Assembly (NCBI GenBank): GCA_965603825.1
Contig: CBFDEM010000005.1
Span: 744,001-808,000, forward strand
Source of the DNA: Blepharisma stoltei ATCC 30299
Lineage: Eukaryota; Protista; Ciliophora
Length of the DNA: 64,000 nucleotides
Reading direction: 5' to 3'
Numbering within the stretch: position 1 is the stretch's first letter; the number at the start of each line of letters is the position of its first letter. The notes beneath the pieces are model-generated. The model saw only the letters and a list, made by a program, of their open reading frames with translations, was not told where the DNA came from and searched no databases. Both the position numbers and the translations under genes were made by a program. This document shows positions 35,031 to 42,742 of the stretch, piece by piece.

Positions 35031-36038
35031 ATGATATATCAAGATGAATTTTCTAAGGACTCGCCTGAAACAAACAAATTTGTCAACTCGCCTAAAAATA
35101 GAAGACTAAAATACCGAGACTTAAGTTTTTCTGACACAAAACATGAAAATAGTCCCAAAAGTCAGCAGAGGCTTGACAGTCATAAAAAAGATAGATCACT
35201 TTCATTCGCAAGAGAAAGGCTGACTCCCTTAAAAATAAAATTGAATACCGACTTTTTAGCGAGGAACTCTGATGAATTTATTTATCAAAGTCAAGTTGAG
35301 CCATTACCCGAAATAAATGTTACTCCAATACGTTGGAGAAATAATGAAAGCGCTTTAATAAATGAGCGAAGAAATTCACCAAAAAGCCCGTTAACGGCAG
35401 GACCTATTGATTTAAATGAAAAAAAATTAATAAATTTATTTAAAACAACTCAAGACAATGGCTTTTCAAGAATGAAGTCCAGGAATGAGAAATTTTCAGC
35501 AGATTATAAAGCCAATTACATAAAACACACTCGAGAACAAGAGATAAAAAAAATGATAAATAAAACAAAAAAATCACAATACGAAGACCAGATAAATCTG
35601 AAAATTAATAATTTAAAAAAAGATAACGAGGAGCTACAAAAGGTCAAATCACCGACAAATGCAGAAATTAATGAAGCTGCTGCAATAAAAGCTGAAAAAG
35701 CTGCCTTAGAAGATGCATTAGAAAAACAAAAAAGGGAAAAAGAAATAAAAAAGCAACAAAAATTGAAAGAAGAGGAAGAAATGATTAAAAAATGGGCACA
35801 CGAAAAACTAGCAGAAAAAAAGGCAAAAAAGGAAAAAGAAAAACAGCTTAAAATGCTTGCGAATGAGCGGGAAATTCAGGCTCAAGAAGTCCAGCTGTCG
35901 AAAATGCAAGAAAAAGAAGCATCAGTTATAGAAACGAAAAAAATCCTGATGAAAACGATGAAAGATATGGAAGATTTTGAAATACGCAGACAAGAATTTT
36001 TCAAACGAAAAAATTTAATAAGCCCAGAACTCGATTAA
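35031..36038 (+). CDS. Hypothetical protein with C-terminal K/E-rich coiled coil
   Basis: 335-aa ATG-TAA ORF. Confidence 0.7.
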   Translation: MIYQDEFSKDSPETNKFVNSPKNRRLKYRDLSFSDTKHENSPKSQQRLDSHKKDRSLSFARERLTPLKIKLNTDFLARNSDEFIYQSQVEPLPEINVTPIRWRNNESALINERRNSPKSPLTAGPIDLNEKKLINLFKTTQDNGFSRMKSRNEKFSADYKANYIKHTREQEIKKMINKTKKSQYEDQINLKINNLKKDNEELQKVKSPTNAEINEAAAIKAEKAALEDALEKQKREKEIKKQQKLKEEEEMIKKWAHEKLAEKKAKKEKEKQLKMLANEREIQAQEVQLSKMQEKEASVIETKKILMKTMKDMEDFEIRRQEFFKRKNLISPELD

Positions 36039-36164
36039 GAAATGAATAAATCGATTTACAGTAATATTTCCATTAAAAAAATTAATATTTACCATATAAT
36101 TAGCAGGAGAAGGCTATATTATGTTAACCTTTATTTATAAACTAATAAGATTATTAAGGAAAAT

Positions 36165-38048
36165 CTATTTTGTCTTTAATGTTCCCAAAAAGCTTTGGAT
36201 AATTCCATAATCTGCCTCACTGACTCCTCGCACATACTTTTTAGTCGTAATAATGACCTCGCTGAAAATGATGCACTGAGGCTTCTTCCTTGTTTGGAAT
36301 AAAACTGACGTTGGATGGATATGAATGATTTCTCTGTCTTTAATTGTCCGATAATGTGTCCCATCAGCTGACAAAAATGCTGAATTCATATAGTAGCCTT
36401 TCGCAAGACATTTAAGAATATTCTCATTTGGCGCATGGACCAATGCAGGATTGTATTTTTTAAGGTACTGTCTGAGCTGTTTTCTTATCATGCTGGCTCT
36501 TTTTATCGAAATTCTATTCAGCCCATGTGTTTTGCATCAGGATTTTGTTTTATTTTTCCGCCATTCCTGATATATTTTTAAAAATGTCAAATGGTCGCCT
36601 TCACTGCATTTAAAAATCTGCATTGCGTTGGCTTCTTTTCTATTAAAATAGCACAAATTTTCGACACTTAATAAAGCGATAATAGTCAAAATATCTTTTG
36701 TGCACTGCAACTGTGGCTCAAGCGACGCAAGCAGAATTCTAGCAAGTACAGGCGGTACTGGCAGCTCAGCCATTTTTCTGCCAAGTAACGTAATCTTTTC
36801 TTCGCCATCTAAAGCGCCCAATCCTCTTAACTCTTGTGTAGCTTTTTCTATATAAATATCATCTGGCCTGTCCATAAATTTAAACAGTCTTGGGTCATGC
36901 CCAATAATTTTCAGCTGCAAAACCACATTTCCTAAATTGGACCTTGTGATTTCAGGCTTTGAATAGTCCTCAAACCCATTAAAGTCTTCTGATGTAAAAA
37001 GTCTGAAACAAATCCCTTCACTTTCTCTCCCAGCTCTTCCAGCCCTTTGTTTTGCAGCTGCTTTGCTGATTTTTACAATTTTCAAGCTTTCCATGCCTGT
37101 TCTTGGGTCATAATTTCTTTCTTTTACCACTCCAGAATCAATGACATATTTGACTCCTGGGATTGTCAAGGACGTTTCAGCTATATTGGTCGCTAGGATT
37201 ATTTTTCTTGTGTTTTCTGGGGCTGATTCAAAGGCTTTCATCTGTAGATGTGAAGGCAAAGCAGCATACATAGCGCAGACTGTAAAGTCCATGGAATTGG
37301 TAGGAAGAAGCTTTCTTTTTCGCAATAAAATGGCTTGCACGTCCTCAATTTCTTCTTGGCCAGTTAAAAATACTAAAATATCGCCAGCAGGATAGTCAAG
37401 GTGAACCTGGACTATCCCTATTACAGTCGCATCAATATGGTCTGGCTCAGGAACTGCTGCATTGAGAATTTTCACAGGGAAAGTCCTACCATGTACTTCG
37501 ATTATTTCTCGACTGGAAAAAAATTCTGCAAATCTCTGTGCTTCAATAGTGGCTGACATAATGATGACTTTTATATCATTTCTTTGTGTTATTAGTTCTC
37601 TAATAAGCCCTAATATAATATCAGTATTTGTGGTGCGCTCATGAGCTTCATCAATAATCAAAAACGAATAATTCCTCAAAATTGGGTCAATTAATGATTC
37701 TCTAATAAGCATCCCATCAGTCAAAAATTTTATTTTTGTATTTTCTGATGTTTTATTTTCAAAACGCACTGAATAGCCTATTAAAGAGCCTATTTCAGAC
37801 TGCCGCTCATAGGCTACTCGTTTGGCTACAGATATAGCTGCAATGCGGCGTGGCTGGGTAATTCCAATTAATTTGTCTGAGTTAAGGGAGGATTCAAGGA
37901 TATATTGAGCTACCTGAGTAGTTTTTCCTGAGCCAGTTTCACCAATTAGAATAGTCACTTGGCTCTTATTAATGGTTTCAAGGATCTTGTGCTTGTATTT
38001 GTAAATGGGGAGTGATTTTCTCTGCTTTTTGATGATTCCTTTGACCAT
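36165..38048 (-). CDS. DEAH-box RNA helicase (DHX33/Prp22-like core, no N-terminal extension)
   Basis: GETGSGKTTQ, TQPRRIAA, DEAH, SAT, TNIAETSLT and QRAGRAGR. The HA2/OB region continues through S-W(TGA 36537)-CKTHGLN to TAG 36165. Confidence 0.95.
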
Positions 38049-38175
38049 ATTATATCTTGATTCCCACAACTTTGTTTATGATTAAAAATAATCAAATATT
38101 GGATTTTTTAAAGTTTTTTAACATAAATTTAGGCAATTTTTAAACAAAATAAATCGAGCTGTATTAAGACTTTAT

Positions 38176-38418
38176 TTAATCTTGGTCGGAGCCTTCATTG
38201 CTTTCACTGAAATCAGAAGGCAATTCCTCTTCTTCAGATTCACTTTTTCTTTCTTTTTTCTTATTTAATTTGCTGACTTTTTCTTTTCCTTTTGGTTTTA
38301 TTTCTGAATACGTTGATGTGGTGGCACTTACTTTTTTAGCTGGTCTTTTTGCAAGCCTTTTATGTGGTGTTTTTGAAGCTTTGACAGGTTTTGAACCGCT
38401 TTGCTTAGTTCGTGCCAT
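38176..38418 (-). CDS. 80-aa protein with a histone-H3-like N-terminal tail and basic/acidic C-terminus, no histone fold
   Basis: Clean ATG-TAA ORF: MARTKQSGSKPVKASKTPHKRLAKRPAKKVSATTST... Confidence 0.7.
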   Translation of the reverse strand: MARTKQSGSKPVKASKTPHKRLAKRPAKKVSATTSTYSEIKPKGKEKVSKLNKKKERKSESEEEELPSDFSESNEGSDQD

Positions 38419-38613
38419 TAATATTTATAATTTGAGTCCCCCGATCTATTTATAGGGAATAGTTTGCTTTAGCGGTTTATAGCTAAAACCTCTATTGTTC
38501 CATTTTAATGTGAATATTTTCTTATACTATTTTTCTAATTAAGACACAGGAAAATGAGCCTACTTACTTTAAATGTCTGACTAAAATTAATAAAAATATA
38601 TTAAAATGTACCC

Positions 38614-39297
38614 TTACATATATAAAAATGAGGTCGGAGAATTCTGCGAGTTCTCTTCTGAATTTTCTTCATATTTAATCCCATTATCAAGCTCATACTC
38701 ATACGACCCCGGAGTATTCTCTCCTCCGCAGCTATCACTATACCCTCCTTCCCCCTCCCCAACTTCTCCTCCTTTTTCTTCCACAATTTCCCCTACAATT
38801 TCTTCAATATTCTCATTTTTTTTAGATTTTTTAAAAATACTTTTCCATCTATTTTTCACACTATTTTCTGTCCTCCCTTTGAGCTCTCTAGAAATCAAGC
38901 TCCAACGATTTCCAAACTTCTTTTGCAATGACAAAATCTTGATATCTTCTTCTAGCGACCATTCTCCTTTCTTTAAATTCGGATTCAAATGGTTATATCA
39001 ACGTTCCCTGCACTGTTTTCCAAGCCTAAATTCTTTGCCTCTATGTAATTTTTCATTTAAAGATAAAGCTATAGCTTTTCAGCGCTTTGGGCCTCTATTT
39101 TGTATAAGTTCTATAAGTACGTCGTCTTCTCTCTCAGTCCAAGGGTGCCTTATGTTATTATTTCCGTCATTTACGTAAGGCCTGCATAAGGGATAATATT
39201 TACGGAAAACTCGGTCTATTTTGCAAGGGACCATCCATAAGCCTTCGTCATCAAGCTCATAGGGCATATGCGAGCTTAGGTTTTCTTCTAATTCCAT
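38614..39297 (-). CDS. R2R3-type Myb transcription factor
   Basis: WTEREDDVLIELIQNRGPKR-W(TGA 39079)...GKQCRER-W(TGA 38998)-YNHLNPNLKKGEWSLEED...GNRWS...GRTENSVKNRW. Confidence 0.93.
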
Positions 39298-39325
39298 TAG
39301 GGAATTCTTATAATAAAATCGTATA

Positions 39326-40453
39326 ATGGAGGCTGAGATAGAGAGGCTTAAAGGGCTGGTGGAGGAGCTGAAACTGGAAAATGAGCAGCTTAAAAATAAA
39401 AGCCAAAGGCAAAAAATCCAAGAAATGAGCCAAGAAGTCCATGATGATAACCCTTATTCAAGACTTATGGCATTAAAAAGAATGGGAGTAGTAGAAAATT
39501 ATACAGAAATTAGGAATTTTACTGTTCTTATTGTAGGACTTGGAGGGATTGGCTCAGTTGCTGCAGAAATGCTTACTAGATGCGGTATTGGGAAATTAAT
39601 ATTATTTGATTATGACAAAGTAGAGCTCGCCAATATGAATCGGCTTTTTTTCCGCCCTGACCAAGCCGGCCTTAGCAAAGTTGAAGCTGCCAAACAGACT
39701 TTATTAGAAATAAACCCAGACGTCGAAATTGACGCATTTTCTTACAATATCTGTACCATGGACAACTATGACCATTTCATCCAACAAATTTCTACAGGCG
39801 GTAAGAATGGAGAAGCAGTAAATCTTGTATTGGCTTGTGTCGATAACTATGCAGCAAGGATTACAATGAATCGGGCATGCGGAGATTTAAACCAAGTCTG
39901 GATGGAGTCAGGGGTTTCTGAAGACGCTATGTCAGGGCATATCCAAACTATATACCCAGGAGAAACAGCTTGTTTTGAATGTGCGCCTCCTTATGTAGTA
40001 GCCTCTGGTGGCGATGAGCACGAAATCAAAAGAGAAGGCGTCTGCGCTGCTTCTTTGCCTACCACTATGGGAGTCGTTGCAGGCTTATTGATCCAGAACA
40101 CACTGAAATATTTGTTAAGATTCGGAAATGTCACTTATTATTTAGGATATTCCTCAAAAACTGACTATTTCCCGAACTATATGATGTCGCCTAACCCTGA
40201 ATGCCCTTTCCGAAGATGTGTAGAGATGCAGAAGGTTTATAATGAAAATCCAGAAAAAAAAAGGGTAAAACCAGAAAATACAGAGGCTGAAGAGCAGAAA
40301 ATTGAGCATGATGAAAATGAGTGGGGAATCACAATAGATGCAGGGGGAGAAGAAGAAAATAAACAGGAAGAAAATGTAGTTAAAGTAGAGAACAAGACAG
40401 AAAGCTTAGAAGATATGAGGAAAAGACTGAAAGAAATGCAGAAAAAGAGCTAA
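39326..40453 (+). CDS. UBA5: UFM1-activating enzyme
   Basis: [46 protein letters not shown] and [12 protein letters not shown]. Confidence 0.96.
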
Positions 40454-40501
40454 TTTTAATTAAAATCACAATAACTATGAATTATTTATAAAAAACAAGA
40501 A

Positions 40502-42742
40502 ATGGAGCAGTACTCAAAACCGACACGGCTGATTCCTTTACAGTTATACTCCCCTTTTCAAAATACAACCCCATTTAGAAGACTTATTTCTAGGGACCAA
40601 GAAAGGCTTCGAGCCAGGTCATTTAAAAACCTCAATGTCCAATCCACCAAAAACCAAAATTGCCCAGAAAAGATAATGAGTTTTGCCAGGCTTTACAGTC
40701 AGCCAGCCCTTGTTTTTACCACCCTTCATGAACGACAAATACTAGGAAGAGTCCGGAAGCCGAAAAACCTGCCTCCATTGTCAAAAACTCAATATGACAG
40801 CCGATTTCCTAAAACAACTGAAGCCAATGAAATAGACAGGAGGGCGTTTTCGCTTGAATTGTCAAGAAATAGCAGCCAGTCTGATATAATAGATGCAAAA
40901 TGGGTAGGTCTAGAAACACATAAAAGCGAAAAAGTCATAGAATTTTTGCCTGATTCTGACCTGATTGAAGAAGCTGCAGAAAACCAGGAATCAGAGCTGA
41001 TAGTAGAAAAGCCAGAAAACCATGATTCTGTTATAAAAACTATCGAAAAAGCTGAAGAAAGCGGAAATTTTAATTTTATTGAAGACAAAGAGCTAGAAGA
41101 AGATTTCAAAGCATTAAAAATTAGCAATATTGAAACTGTTGAGCAAGATAACAAGTCAGAAGATTTCGAAATAAATGAAAATCAGGAAAAAGAGACTGAT
41201 AAAGGAGAAGAAATCGTCATACCCAAGCTGAATTTACAAATAGAGCATAATCGGCATGACGTAGAAGAAGCGACCAGTCCATTGTTAACCCCACTATCAT
41301 TGCCAAAAATTCAAATTATTGAAGAACATCAAGAAGCTAGGACAGTCGCAGAAAATTCTTCTCTGACTTTTGAAGCTCCTGGGGTGATTTTAAGGCTAAA
41401 TTCAATAATTATCACTGTAGAAGGGGTGGATTTTGAATTGAAAATTCCGCTTGCACTGTGCAAACATGTGATGTTTGGGACTGAGCTTGATATTATAGTT
41501 AATATCACGACCAGTGTTTTTATTGGGAATAATCAATTAACTTTTATGAAAAAAGAAAATTATTTAACAAATTATGCAGAAATTTCAGCCAATAATATGC
41601 AAATTATTTTTCAGCCAGATTTTCAAAGGTCATTTCTTCTGCTCAAACCAGGCGCTGTAAAAGGAAAAATGATAGGAAAAACTATTAAAAGGCTTGAATT
41701 AGCTGGACTTGTAATGAAAGCAAGCAAAATGATAAAGCCGAGCAAAAATATTGTGCAAGAGTTTTATAAGGATTTAAAAGATGCTGAAAATTACGAAAAA
41801 CTAGTAGAAGGGCTAGCAGAAGGCCCGGTCGTTGTGATGAGCTGGGAAGGGTCAAATGCGATTTTTGTATGTAGAAAAATAATTCAAGCTATAGAGGATA
41901 AACTGTCTCCAGATTCTCCACTAAGCGGCAGCTTTTATTCACCAGAAAATCAAAAAGATACAGAAAAACAGCTGAATCTATGGTTTTCCAATGAAGAGCG
42001 CAAAAACTGGGACTATCATAAAAATCCAAGAATAATAAAAACTGGACAAGCAAACCGCGCCTGGGCAATTAAGCTGCCAACGATAGAATATATAACAATA
42101 GGTGGCAGCATTATCCGTCCAATTCCTCTAGGAATCTTACGACAAATGATAGATTCCCATTTTGATAAATGGAACGAAAAATGGATGACTTATTTTAAGG
42201 CTCATGAAATAGAGGAAAAATCTCCAAGGGCAAAACGATCAGGGACAGACACAAGCTCGCTAAAAGCTAATACTGTTCATAATGAAAAAACAGTGATTTT
42301 ATCACTTAATGCGCCTGAAGTCGTCATGAGCAATCATGAGCTTGAAGCTAAATACTCATTCAAAATTGAAGACATTTCTTCACTTCTAGCCATAGTAGAC
42401 GAAAACGGCAAAGATTTCCTTGAAAATATCATGATAGGCTGCAAACTTTCGAGCTCAGAAATTCGGAAGAAAAAAGTTTGGAAATTAAAGCTTGCAATTG
42501 ATCCTTTAGAGTTCACAGGGACCAAAACCCATAAGCTTGAAGCACATGTAGCAGATATTGACATTGACGGAACCATCTATAATTGTGAATTTTACATGCC
42601 GAGCGTTGATGTATACGACCCAGAAACAAAACATCACAATCGAATTCGCTTAGATAGCGATACATGCCAAAAACTGGCATTAGAAAACTTCGATAATTGG
42701 GAAAAAACTTGTCTGGATTATTTTGAAAAAAATAACAATTAA
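40502..42742 (+). CDS. Large protein with an embedded, probably inactive NDP-kinase-like domain
   Basis: QRSFLLLKPGAV...GKTIKRLE..GL...FY.DL...GPVVVMSWEG.NAI...LNLWF is an NDK-fold pattern. The catalytic HGSD is replaced by YSPE. Confidence 0.8.
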   Translation: MEQYSKPTRLIPLQLYSPFQNTTPFRRLISRDQERLRARSFKNLNVQSTKNQNCPEKIMSFARLYSQPALVFTTLHERQILGRVRKPKNLPPLSKTQYDSRFPKTTEANEIDRRAFSLELSRNSSQSDIIDAKWVGLETHKSEKVIEFLPDSDLIEEAAENQESELIVEKPENHDSVIKTIEKAEESGNFNFIEDKELEEDFKALKISNIETVEQDNKSEDFEINENQEKETDKGEEIVIPKLNLQIEHNRHDVEEATSPLLTPLSLPKIQIIEEHQEARTVAENSSLTFEAPGVILRLNSIIITVEGVDFELKIPLALCKHVMFGTELDIIVNITTSVFIGNNQLTFMKKENYLTNYAEISANNMQIIFQPDFQRSFLLLKPGAVKGKMIGKTIKRLELAGLVMKASKMIKPSKNIVQEFYKDLKDAENYEKLVEGLAEGPVVVMSWEGSNAIFVCRKIIQAIEDKLSPDSPLSGSFYSPENQKDTEKQLNLWFSNEERKNWDYHKNPRIIKTGQANRAWAIKLPTIEYITIGGSIIRPIPLGILRQMIDSHFDKWNEKWMTYFKAHEIEEKSPRAKRSGTDTSSLKANTVHNEKTVILSLNAPEVVMSNHELEAKYSFKIEDISSLLAIVDENGKDFLENIMIGCKLSSSEIRKKKVWKLKLAIDPLEFTGTKTHKLEAHVADIDIDGTIYNCEFYMPSVDVYDPETKHHNRIRLDSDTCQKLALENFDNWEKTCLDYFEKNNN

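Follow-up and report, generated by a model that had tools for sequence, protein, structure and literature searches.

A candidate family of free-standing histone H3 tail genes in the ciliate Blepharisma stoltei

The locus and its reading frame

The window analysed here is a 64,000-nt stretch of DNA from Blepharisma stoltei ATCC 30299. Its minus strand carries, at 38176..38418 (-), a complete ORF of 80 codons followed by a TAA stop, which is annotated in NCBI/UniRef as protein P0001 and which we call tailX. With ORFs re-called using UGA=Trp, the order of genes on the minus strand is a Myb gene (39297..38614), the tailX ORF, and a DEAH/HA2 helicase gene with its ATG at 38048. The initial annotation had described an intact 80-codon gene ending in TAA without naming its strand. 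Minus-strand translation of 38418..38176 gives exactly the 80-residue protein quoted there, then TAA, and the opposite (plus) strand at 38176-38418 is closed by many stops. In B. stoltei only UGA is reassigned (to Trp) and introns are mostly 15-16 nt long (PMC9942806), so the TAA that ends tailX is a genuine stop. Within the ORF or close to it, three 15-nt GT..AG strings were considered as introns and rejected as purine-rich coding sequence, unsupported as splice joints.

The upstream neighbour (38614..39297 (-)) encodes a Myb DNA-binding protein of 227 aa and the downstream neighbour (36165..38048 (-)) the DEAH/HA2 helicase. Family scans of both were run piecewise, with UGA (Trp) codons splitting the two products. 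Between tailX and the helicase ATG there is a spacer of 127 nt (38049..38175 (-)) with stops in every frame, in close agreement with the distance of about 130 nt originally given to the next gene. On the other side of the ORF, ~45 nt of 5' flank (38419..38463 (-)) can be aligned to the 5' flanks of H3 genes.

Three parts can be distinguished in the predicted product. Codons 1-36 (38311..38418 (-)) are a homologue of the H3 tail, while codons 37-58 (38245..38310 (-)) form a Lys-rich basic linker which includes the NLS-like KKKERK and is without similarity to the H3 fold. Codons 59-80 (38179..38244 (-)) make up an acidic end, rich in Ser, Glu and Asp and free of K and R. The protein is thus a charge diblock, with 21 K+R in residues 1-58 (pI 11) and 10 D+E in residues 59-80 (pI ~4). 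The acidic end shows an S-x-x-E/D spacing, which we take to be of the casein-kinase-2 type. The Atlas model of tailX has a pLDDT of only 0.30 and the protein is therefore regarded as disordered; no family could be assigned to it from the Pfam scan or from Atlas, and the Pfam scan of tailX gave no match to the histone fold (Pfam Histone, PF00125).

A tblastn search with H3 residues 41-138 gave no match in the 64-kb window or around the paralogue described below. Taken together with the translation and the Pfam result, this bears out the claim of a free-standing H3 tail without a histone fold. The further claim, that no alternative frame or intron supplies a fold, also stands, as the gap to the helicase has stops in 3/3 frames and the window holds no H3 fold. 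Splicing to a fold exon was rejected as well: none of the RNA-like contigs (see below) across 35800-41000 contains a joint, and the splicing that would have spoken against a tail-only gene is unsupported by them. Having no fold, tailX cannot enter a nucleosome and, going by its sequence, does not qualify structurally as a histone.

Descent from the host H3 and a second copy on contig 53

When compared with the genome's own 138-aa H3, tailX aligns without gaps over 36 residues, of which 22 are identical, including MARTKQ, K9, KTP, LA and AKKVSATTS. The retention of ARTKQ and K9 was therefore correctly read at the outset. The one-residue insertion described with it is present relative to textbook H3 but disappears against the host H3, whose own build has the same tail length. 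The nonapeptide A-K-K-V-S-A-T-T-S, exact in tailX, is particular to the H3 of Blepharisma; textbook H3 lacks it. When the 41-Mb genome was searched by tblastn with the 80-aa query, the only matches besides tailX were full-length H3 genes with 137-142 codons (E ~7e-4), and pairwise blastn between tailX and the H3 genes gave E-values down to 6e-12, a resemblance beyond chance. Similarity at the DNA level (62-69% identity) begins ~17-45 nt upstream of the ATG and extends to about +105..+117. Beyond codon ~39 of tailX no H3 likeness was found in DNA or protein in any frame, which rules out the C-terminal half as a frameshifted H3 remnant. Since the similarity is limited to the 5' flank and tail of H3, we conclude from these alignments that tailX is a partial H3 duplicate, consisting of 5' flank and tail, to which unrelated sequence has been joined, and not a convergent mimic.

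A gene of the same layout is present on contig 53. The back-translated pattern K-T-P-x-K-x-L-A matched at C53:911629, inside a 68-codon ORF ending in TAA (C53:911587-911793), with a Myb copy directly upstream. Genome-wide, the back-translated patterns M-A-R-T-K, M-x-R-T-K-Q and K-T-P-x-K-x-L-A had no matches other than full-length H3 genes, an H3 variant of 133 aa and this 68-aa paralogue, yielding no third member, and no exact tailX product is on record on other contigs. Both tailX and the paralogue are annotated B. stoltei proteins, and in both an H3 tail, a basic patch and an acidic end follow one another within 68-80 codons behind a Myb gene. The tail of the paralogue starts with M-A-R-S-K-T and carries R8-K9, K-T-P-R-K-H-L-A-T and V-K-K; a Lys-rich patch and a Ser/Glu/Asp end follow, the basic linker of tailX being kept there only as composition and order. 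The two mini-proteins are 41% identical (28/68), with a global alignment z=7.1 against shuffles. Their C-terminal halves agree only in the order of charge blocks, the fine sequence being different (block-preserving shuffle P=0.24). Loss of fine sequence with charge blocks kept is usual in disordered regions. A G-run and TATAAATA-TAATG are common to the tailX 5' flank and the short upstream region of the paralogue, a weak and AT-rich likeness.

Comparison of the two loci by blastn revealed two collinear blocks. One covers the Myb gene (76% identity over 667 nt; the copy on contig 53 lies at C53:910878-911543 (+)), and the other covers the mini-gene from -11 to the stop (61% over 226 nt). The downstream genes differ, with the helicase next to tailX, outside the duplicated block, and a phosphatidylserine decarboxylase next to the paralogue; none of the further flanking ORFs compared between the loci match. 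Because the mini-genes share their layout behind paralogous, collinear Myb genes, the two loci can be interpreted as one old segmental duplication, and by these comparisons a block of ~1.1 kb (Myb plus mini-gene) is a single, ancient duplicate. The Myb pair has a pS of 0.70 (0.81 in the Myb domain) and a pN of 0.13, and at this pS the synonymous sites of the duplication are saturated.

Two minor features of the Myb pair were observed. In the copy on contig 53 the frame ahead of the Myb domain is interrupted by stops, which probably reflect a different start or tiny introns. Opposite both Myb genes there are antisense ORFs (38606-39178 (+), 190 aa, and C53:910973-911605 (-), 210 aa) that are 68% identical to each other, and these most likely follow from sense-frame conservation and a purine-rich coding strand and do not point to genes.

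Relative to the closest H3 tails, tailX has a pS of 0.54-0.65 and a pN of 0.30, a synonymous divergence as large as that among old H3 paralogues. The Ser equivalent to S28 is encoded by AGT in tailX and by TCA in every H3 gene. Pairwise omega on the tail is 0.26-0.43, a value derived from 35 codons with saturated dS and with all dN charged to one branch, and too few sites for neutrality to be rejected on this ground alone. We simulated neutral drift with the base composition of the window. At d=0.47 per site, which is half the smallest dS, the probability of 80 codons staying open was 0.014 and that of the tail keeping at least 22/36 identities was 0.008; at d=0.3 per site the corresponding values were 0.04 and 0.26. 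For a single copy, over 35 codons, this simulation is suggestive only of constraint on tailX. When the open frames of two copies were considered, with substitutions only counted, the probabilities for 80 and 68 codons were 0.013 and 0.022 at d=0.5 (~3e-4 for both), and 0.002 and 0.005 at d=1.0 (~1e-5 for both). Two open frames and 41% identity despite saturation argue that the tail-only layout predates the duplication and was kept by selection in both lineages. We suggest that tailX is probably a real, maintained member of a gene family and not a broken histone. A truncated H3 pseudogene in neutral decay, the outcome that the initial annotation itself had set against its proposal, is unlikely, as a paralogue of the same layout has outlived a duplication saturated in dS.

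Residues invariant across tailX, the paralogue and H3 are M1, A, R, K4, K9, K-T-P, K18/19 and L-A, together with a single Ala ahead of the K27-like pair and a single Lys within it. At position 3, tailX and H3 have Thr and the paralogue has Ser. In tailX, A1-R2-T3-K4 and the K27-like block are kept, as are the equivalents of K4, K9, K14, K18 and K27 of the host H3; R8 is lost, and the context of K9 has changed from A-R-K-T to G-S-K-P. The paralogue retains R8-K9 in the context T-R-K-L, with T3 and Q5 altered. Because A-R-K-T became G-S-K-P, the H3K9 part of the idea that the protein serves as a decoy would be at its weakest for the tailX copy. The longest block common to both mini-proteins and H3 is K-T-P-x-K-x-L-A-x-K/R. 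Residues 1-28 of H3 constitute an NLS, in which K14 and K23 are read by yeast Kap123 (PMC5677370), and the common block overlaps the parts of this NLS that are ordered by Kap123 (residues 12-17 and 21-26; PMC5677370).

Orthologues, proposed early on as a check, were sought and did not appear outside Blepharisma. A word search with the single protein and with a two-member profile, a full HMMER run against 1.84e9 representatives, and a scan of JGI metagenomes all returned the two Blepharisma proteins only. Among the 5.8e9 or 1.84e9 proteins of these collections heterotrich genomes are few, so that the absence of an orthologue outside Blepharisma is weak evidence, and the family is provisionally taken as Blepharisma-specific.

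RNA-like contigs over the locus

The RNA-like data consist of Logan contigs from four runs (X1-X4) of one 2022 study, for which the kind of run was guessed and the contigs are unstranded. Judging by date, these runs may be those of a published time course of conjugation between two strains, with a deposition date of January 2022 (PMC9942806). Contig ends in 35800-41000 fall within about 0-30 nt of CDS ends, namely 0-10 nt from start codons and 12-31 nt past stop codons. Intergenic gaps in the same interval are given as empty in 4/4 runs, with the spacer between the ORF and the helicase covered in X1 and X2. Contig ends at CDS ends together with empty gaps are the signature of RNA, and the locus fits very short UTRs and spacers down to 28-48 nt.

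Coverage of tailX varies between the runs. In X1 the ORF is covered at 38187-38306, with a word depth of 263 compared with 45 for the helicase contig, and in X2 a single contig runs from the helicase up to 38350. In X3 and X4 the helicase is transcribed without tailX; its contig ends at 38039 and the tailX ORF is bare. The spacer at 38049..38175 is covered solely in the two runs that also cover the tailX ORF. RNA-like contigs are thus found over codons 24-80 in 2/4 runs, and no contig in any of the four runs lies over 38351-38418, which holds the ATG and codons 1-23 with the H3-like part. The tailX ORF region appears to be transcribed in some samples or conditions only. A complete lack of transcription, named beforehand as an argument against the gene, is contradicted by the RNA-like contigs for codons 24-80, though not for the uncovered ATG and codons 1-23. 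As the contigs stop short of the start codon, we can only infer that the tail part is translated.

Further to that, X1 and X2 have ~2x as many contigs and the helicase is split in them at bubble-like overlaps, which would fit samples of two mixed strains. A contig that bridges into the helicase is not proof of a single transcript.

One X1 contig, with 255 foreign letters, passes into the window sequence at 38187 (codon 77), nine bases short of the stop. Its foreign end is an exact match to C53:912060-912089, inside the decarboxylase gene. That gene has its ATG 137 nt downstream from the paralogous mini-gene, and the reading frame would continue across the joint. The two sites of the joint have no repeat in common. 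Being a single contig from a single run, it is by default read as probably a library chimera. At the same time, it is unlikely that the partner adjoins the paralogue by chance. Another small observation concerns 35 nt in the helicase gene (37351-37385), which recur in three runs, with one mismatch, within a longer transcript contig that is otherwise unrelated.

Known systems, possible function and alternative readings

Histone-tail mimicry is known in the form of short convergent motifs in viral and cellular proteins, and peptides of the free H3 tail are in standard use in the laboratory. Rules have been described for mimicry of the H3 N-terminus by H3TMs such as VRK1, namely Met removal, R2 and K4 (Chen et al. 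2021, PMC8166343). The sequence of tailX fits all three, Met removal being predicted from the Ala after Met, and R2 and K4 are found in M-A-R-T-K-Q of tailX as well as in M-A-R-S-K-T of the paralogue. After Met removal the N-terminus of tailX would be A-R-T-K, the PHD-finger/NuRD epitope; binding to PHD, Tudor or NuRD modules is a further trait of H3TMs. However, H3TMs are folded proteins with few convergent residues (PMC8166343), whereas tailX has ~36 residues by descent and little else. In being small, disordered and presumably nuclear, tailX resembles PAF15 (PCLAF) and DPPA3/Stella, which engage the UHRF1 PHD finger in the manner of the H3 tail and offer a parallel for competition at a reader/writer (PMC9943068, PMC9757060). 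PAF15 differs in having V-R-T-K and a PIP box, and its sequence is unrelated to that of tailX; the PIP box pattern Q-x-x-[LIM]-x-x-[FY]-[FY] is absent from the 80 residues of tailX. A UHRF1/DNMT1 pathway is not known from ciliates.

EZHIP, G9a, influenza NS1 and SARS-CoV-2 ORF8 are also non-histone proteins that present a histone-tail-like peptide to enzymes or readers of chromatin, EZHIP acting as a competitive inhibitor (10.1101/585729; PMC6028506; 10.1101/2021.11.10.468057). Their motifs, unlike the tail of tailX, are of 4-12 residues and are internal or C-terminal. EZHIP has Met at the K27 position, where tailX has Lys: the K27-equivalent position is occupied by Lys-Lys, without the K27M-like feature (Met, or Ile/Nle-like) of EZHIP-type PRC2 inhibitors, in the host's context A-K-K-V-S and not A-R-K-S. 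The A-R-K-S/T motif is also absent around K9, from tailX and, with its T-R-K-L, from the paralogue. Protease-clipped H3 tails (PMC7826276) resemble tailX as free N-terminal H3 peptides without a fold, but they arise post-translationally and the tail is usually discarded, in contrast to an encoded protein with basic and acidic modules. The canonical H3 and H3 variants of B. stoltei (PMC9942806 SI) are homologous to tailX over residues 1-36 and ~45 nt of 5' flank, and differ from it in having the histone fold. In the genome paper, 11 H3s were annotated with fold-based HistoneDB models and a tail-only gene is unmentioned (PMC9942806 SI). That annotation missed tailX, and fold-based histone annotation overlooks tail-only genes of this kind. 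A full-text literature search for tail-only or fold-less H3 in ciliates returned nothing relevant.

We lean, with slightly better than even confidence, towards tailX being a maintained gene that arose from the copied 5' part of an H3 gene and a new C-terminus, and that acts as a tail-based nuclear competitor or substrate. According to this account, the promoter-proximal region and first ~36-39 codons of H3 would have been copied and joined to a new basic-then-acidic C-terminus, and the ancient duplication of Myb and mini-gene would then have given rise to the second member (68 aa, contig 53), both frames remaining open and of the same layout. Methionine aminopeptidase accepts Ala following Met. 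The initiator Met of tailX would thus be removed and an A-R-T-K-Q N-terminus exposed as in H3. The K-T-P-x-K-x-L-A-x-K/R block, as the counterpart of the H3-tail NLS, may allow entry to the nucleus via histone import receptors. Once there, the free tail could serve as a soluble competitor or substrate, binding to proteins specific for the H3 N-terminus and the K27-like block or being modified by them. The acidic and probably phosphorylatable end might shield the basic tail in cis or associate with further basic proteins of chromatin, and expression of the gene would be condition-dependent. Met removal, NLS-driven import, engagement of readers and writers, and phospho-regulation of the acidic end are what we infer from sequence features of the protein, and a decoy or substrate function is plausible on the same grounds.

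A more far-reaching version is doubtful: free H3 tails would be dedicated and developmentally switched regulators, imported by the histone pathway and competing with nucleosomal H3 for K4/K27-type writers, readers or tail proteases in one kind of nucleus. H3K9/K27 methylation is thought to guide DNA elimination in ciliates. If true, such regulation could tune histone-mark-guided DNA elimination and nuclear differentiation, and no natural gene family of 'tail-only histones' would have preceded these two genes. A loose H3 tail encoded in the genome, derived from the organism's own H3 and present in two copies, is in any case a natural experiment on the tail away from the nucleosome. It raises the questions of whether such a tail is imported by histone karyopherins, whether it is methylated or acetylated, and whether it titrates readers and writers.

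Some of the same features could be accommodated if the H3-derived part were only a histone-type import signal or chaperone handle and the working part were the basic/acidic diblock, for instance in a small protein that binds chromatin or histones under the control of phosphorylation, with no decoy activity towards readers or writers. The best-conserved stretch, K-T-P-x-K-x-L-A-x-K/R, is indeed the one that overlaps the Kap123-bound parts of the H3 NLS (PMC5677370); the K9 context is gone in tailX, T3 and Q5 are changed in the paralogue, and it is the charge-block architecture that is conserved and not the fine sequence. However, the extreme N-terminal M-A-R-T/S-K and the K27-like A-x-K-K are retained in both copies, and neither would be required just for import, given that the basic patch by itself resembles a classical NLS. 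A role restricted to import or chaperone binding is therefore, in our opinion, possible but on the unlikely side.

Clearly less probable is a non-functional relic, i.e. a partial H3 duplicate with a leftover promoter and a frame that is open by chance until the first stop. In its favour, the protein is short, disordered and of low complexity, with no orthologues found outside the species, the chance of 44 extra codons being open is ~0.08 in this composition, and the omega of the tail does not by itself speak against neutrality. Yet a second three-part copy outlived a saturated duplication (joint P <=3e-4, substitutions only), amino-acid identity to H3 is above the neutral-drift prediction at the estimated age, and the TCA -> AGT codon switch still yields Ser. 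We give the least credit to the idea that the RNA over tailX belongs to the helicase gene, as a long 5' leader or an upstream start used under certain conditions, making tailX at most a uORF, even though contigs in X1 and X2 are unbroken from the helicase body over the 127-nt spacer into tailX and none reaches the tailX ATG. The X1 piece at 38187-38306, with its depth of 263 vs 45, fits a separate and more abundant short RNA, the paralogue keeps its ORF beside a different downstream gene (phosphatidylserine decarboxylase), and tailX has an H3-like 5' flank of its own. A maintained tail gene acting as competitor or substrate thus remains our preferred reading.

Among the H3 genes of this genome, the 133-aa variant matched by the back-translated patterns (C26:96385-96786) has a normal start and several core changes. 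Its region from K27 to alphaN is shortened and rewritten (…KAAEIKPRGVKPPNRLL…), and the hexapeptide E-I-K-P-K/R-G is common to this variant and the mini-protein.
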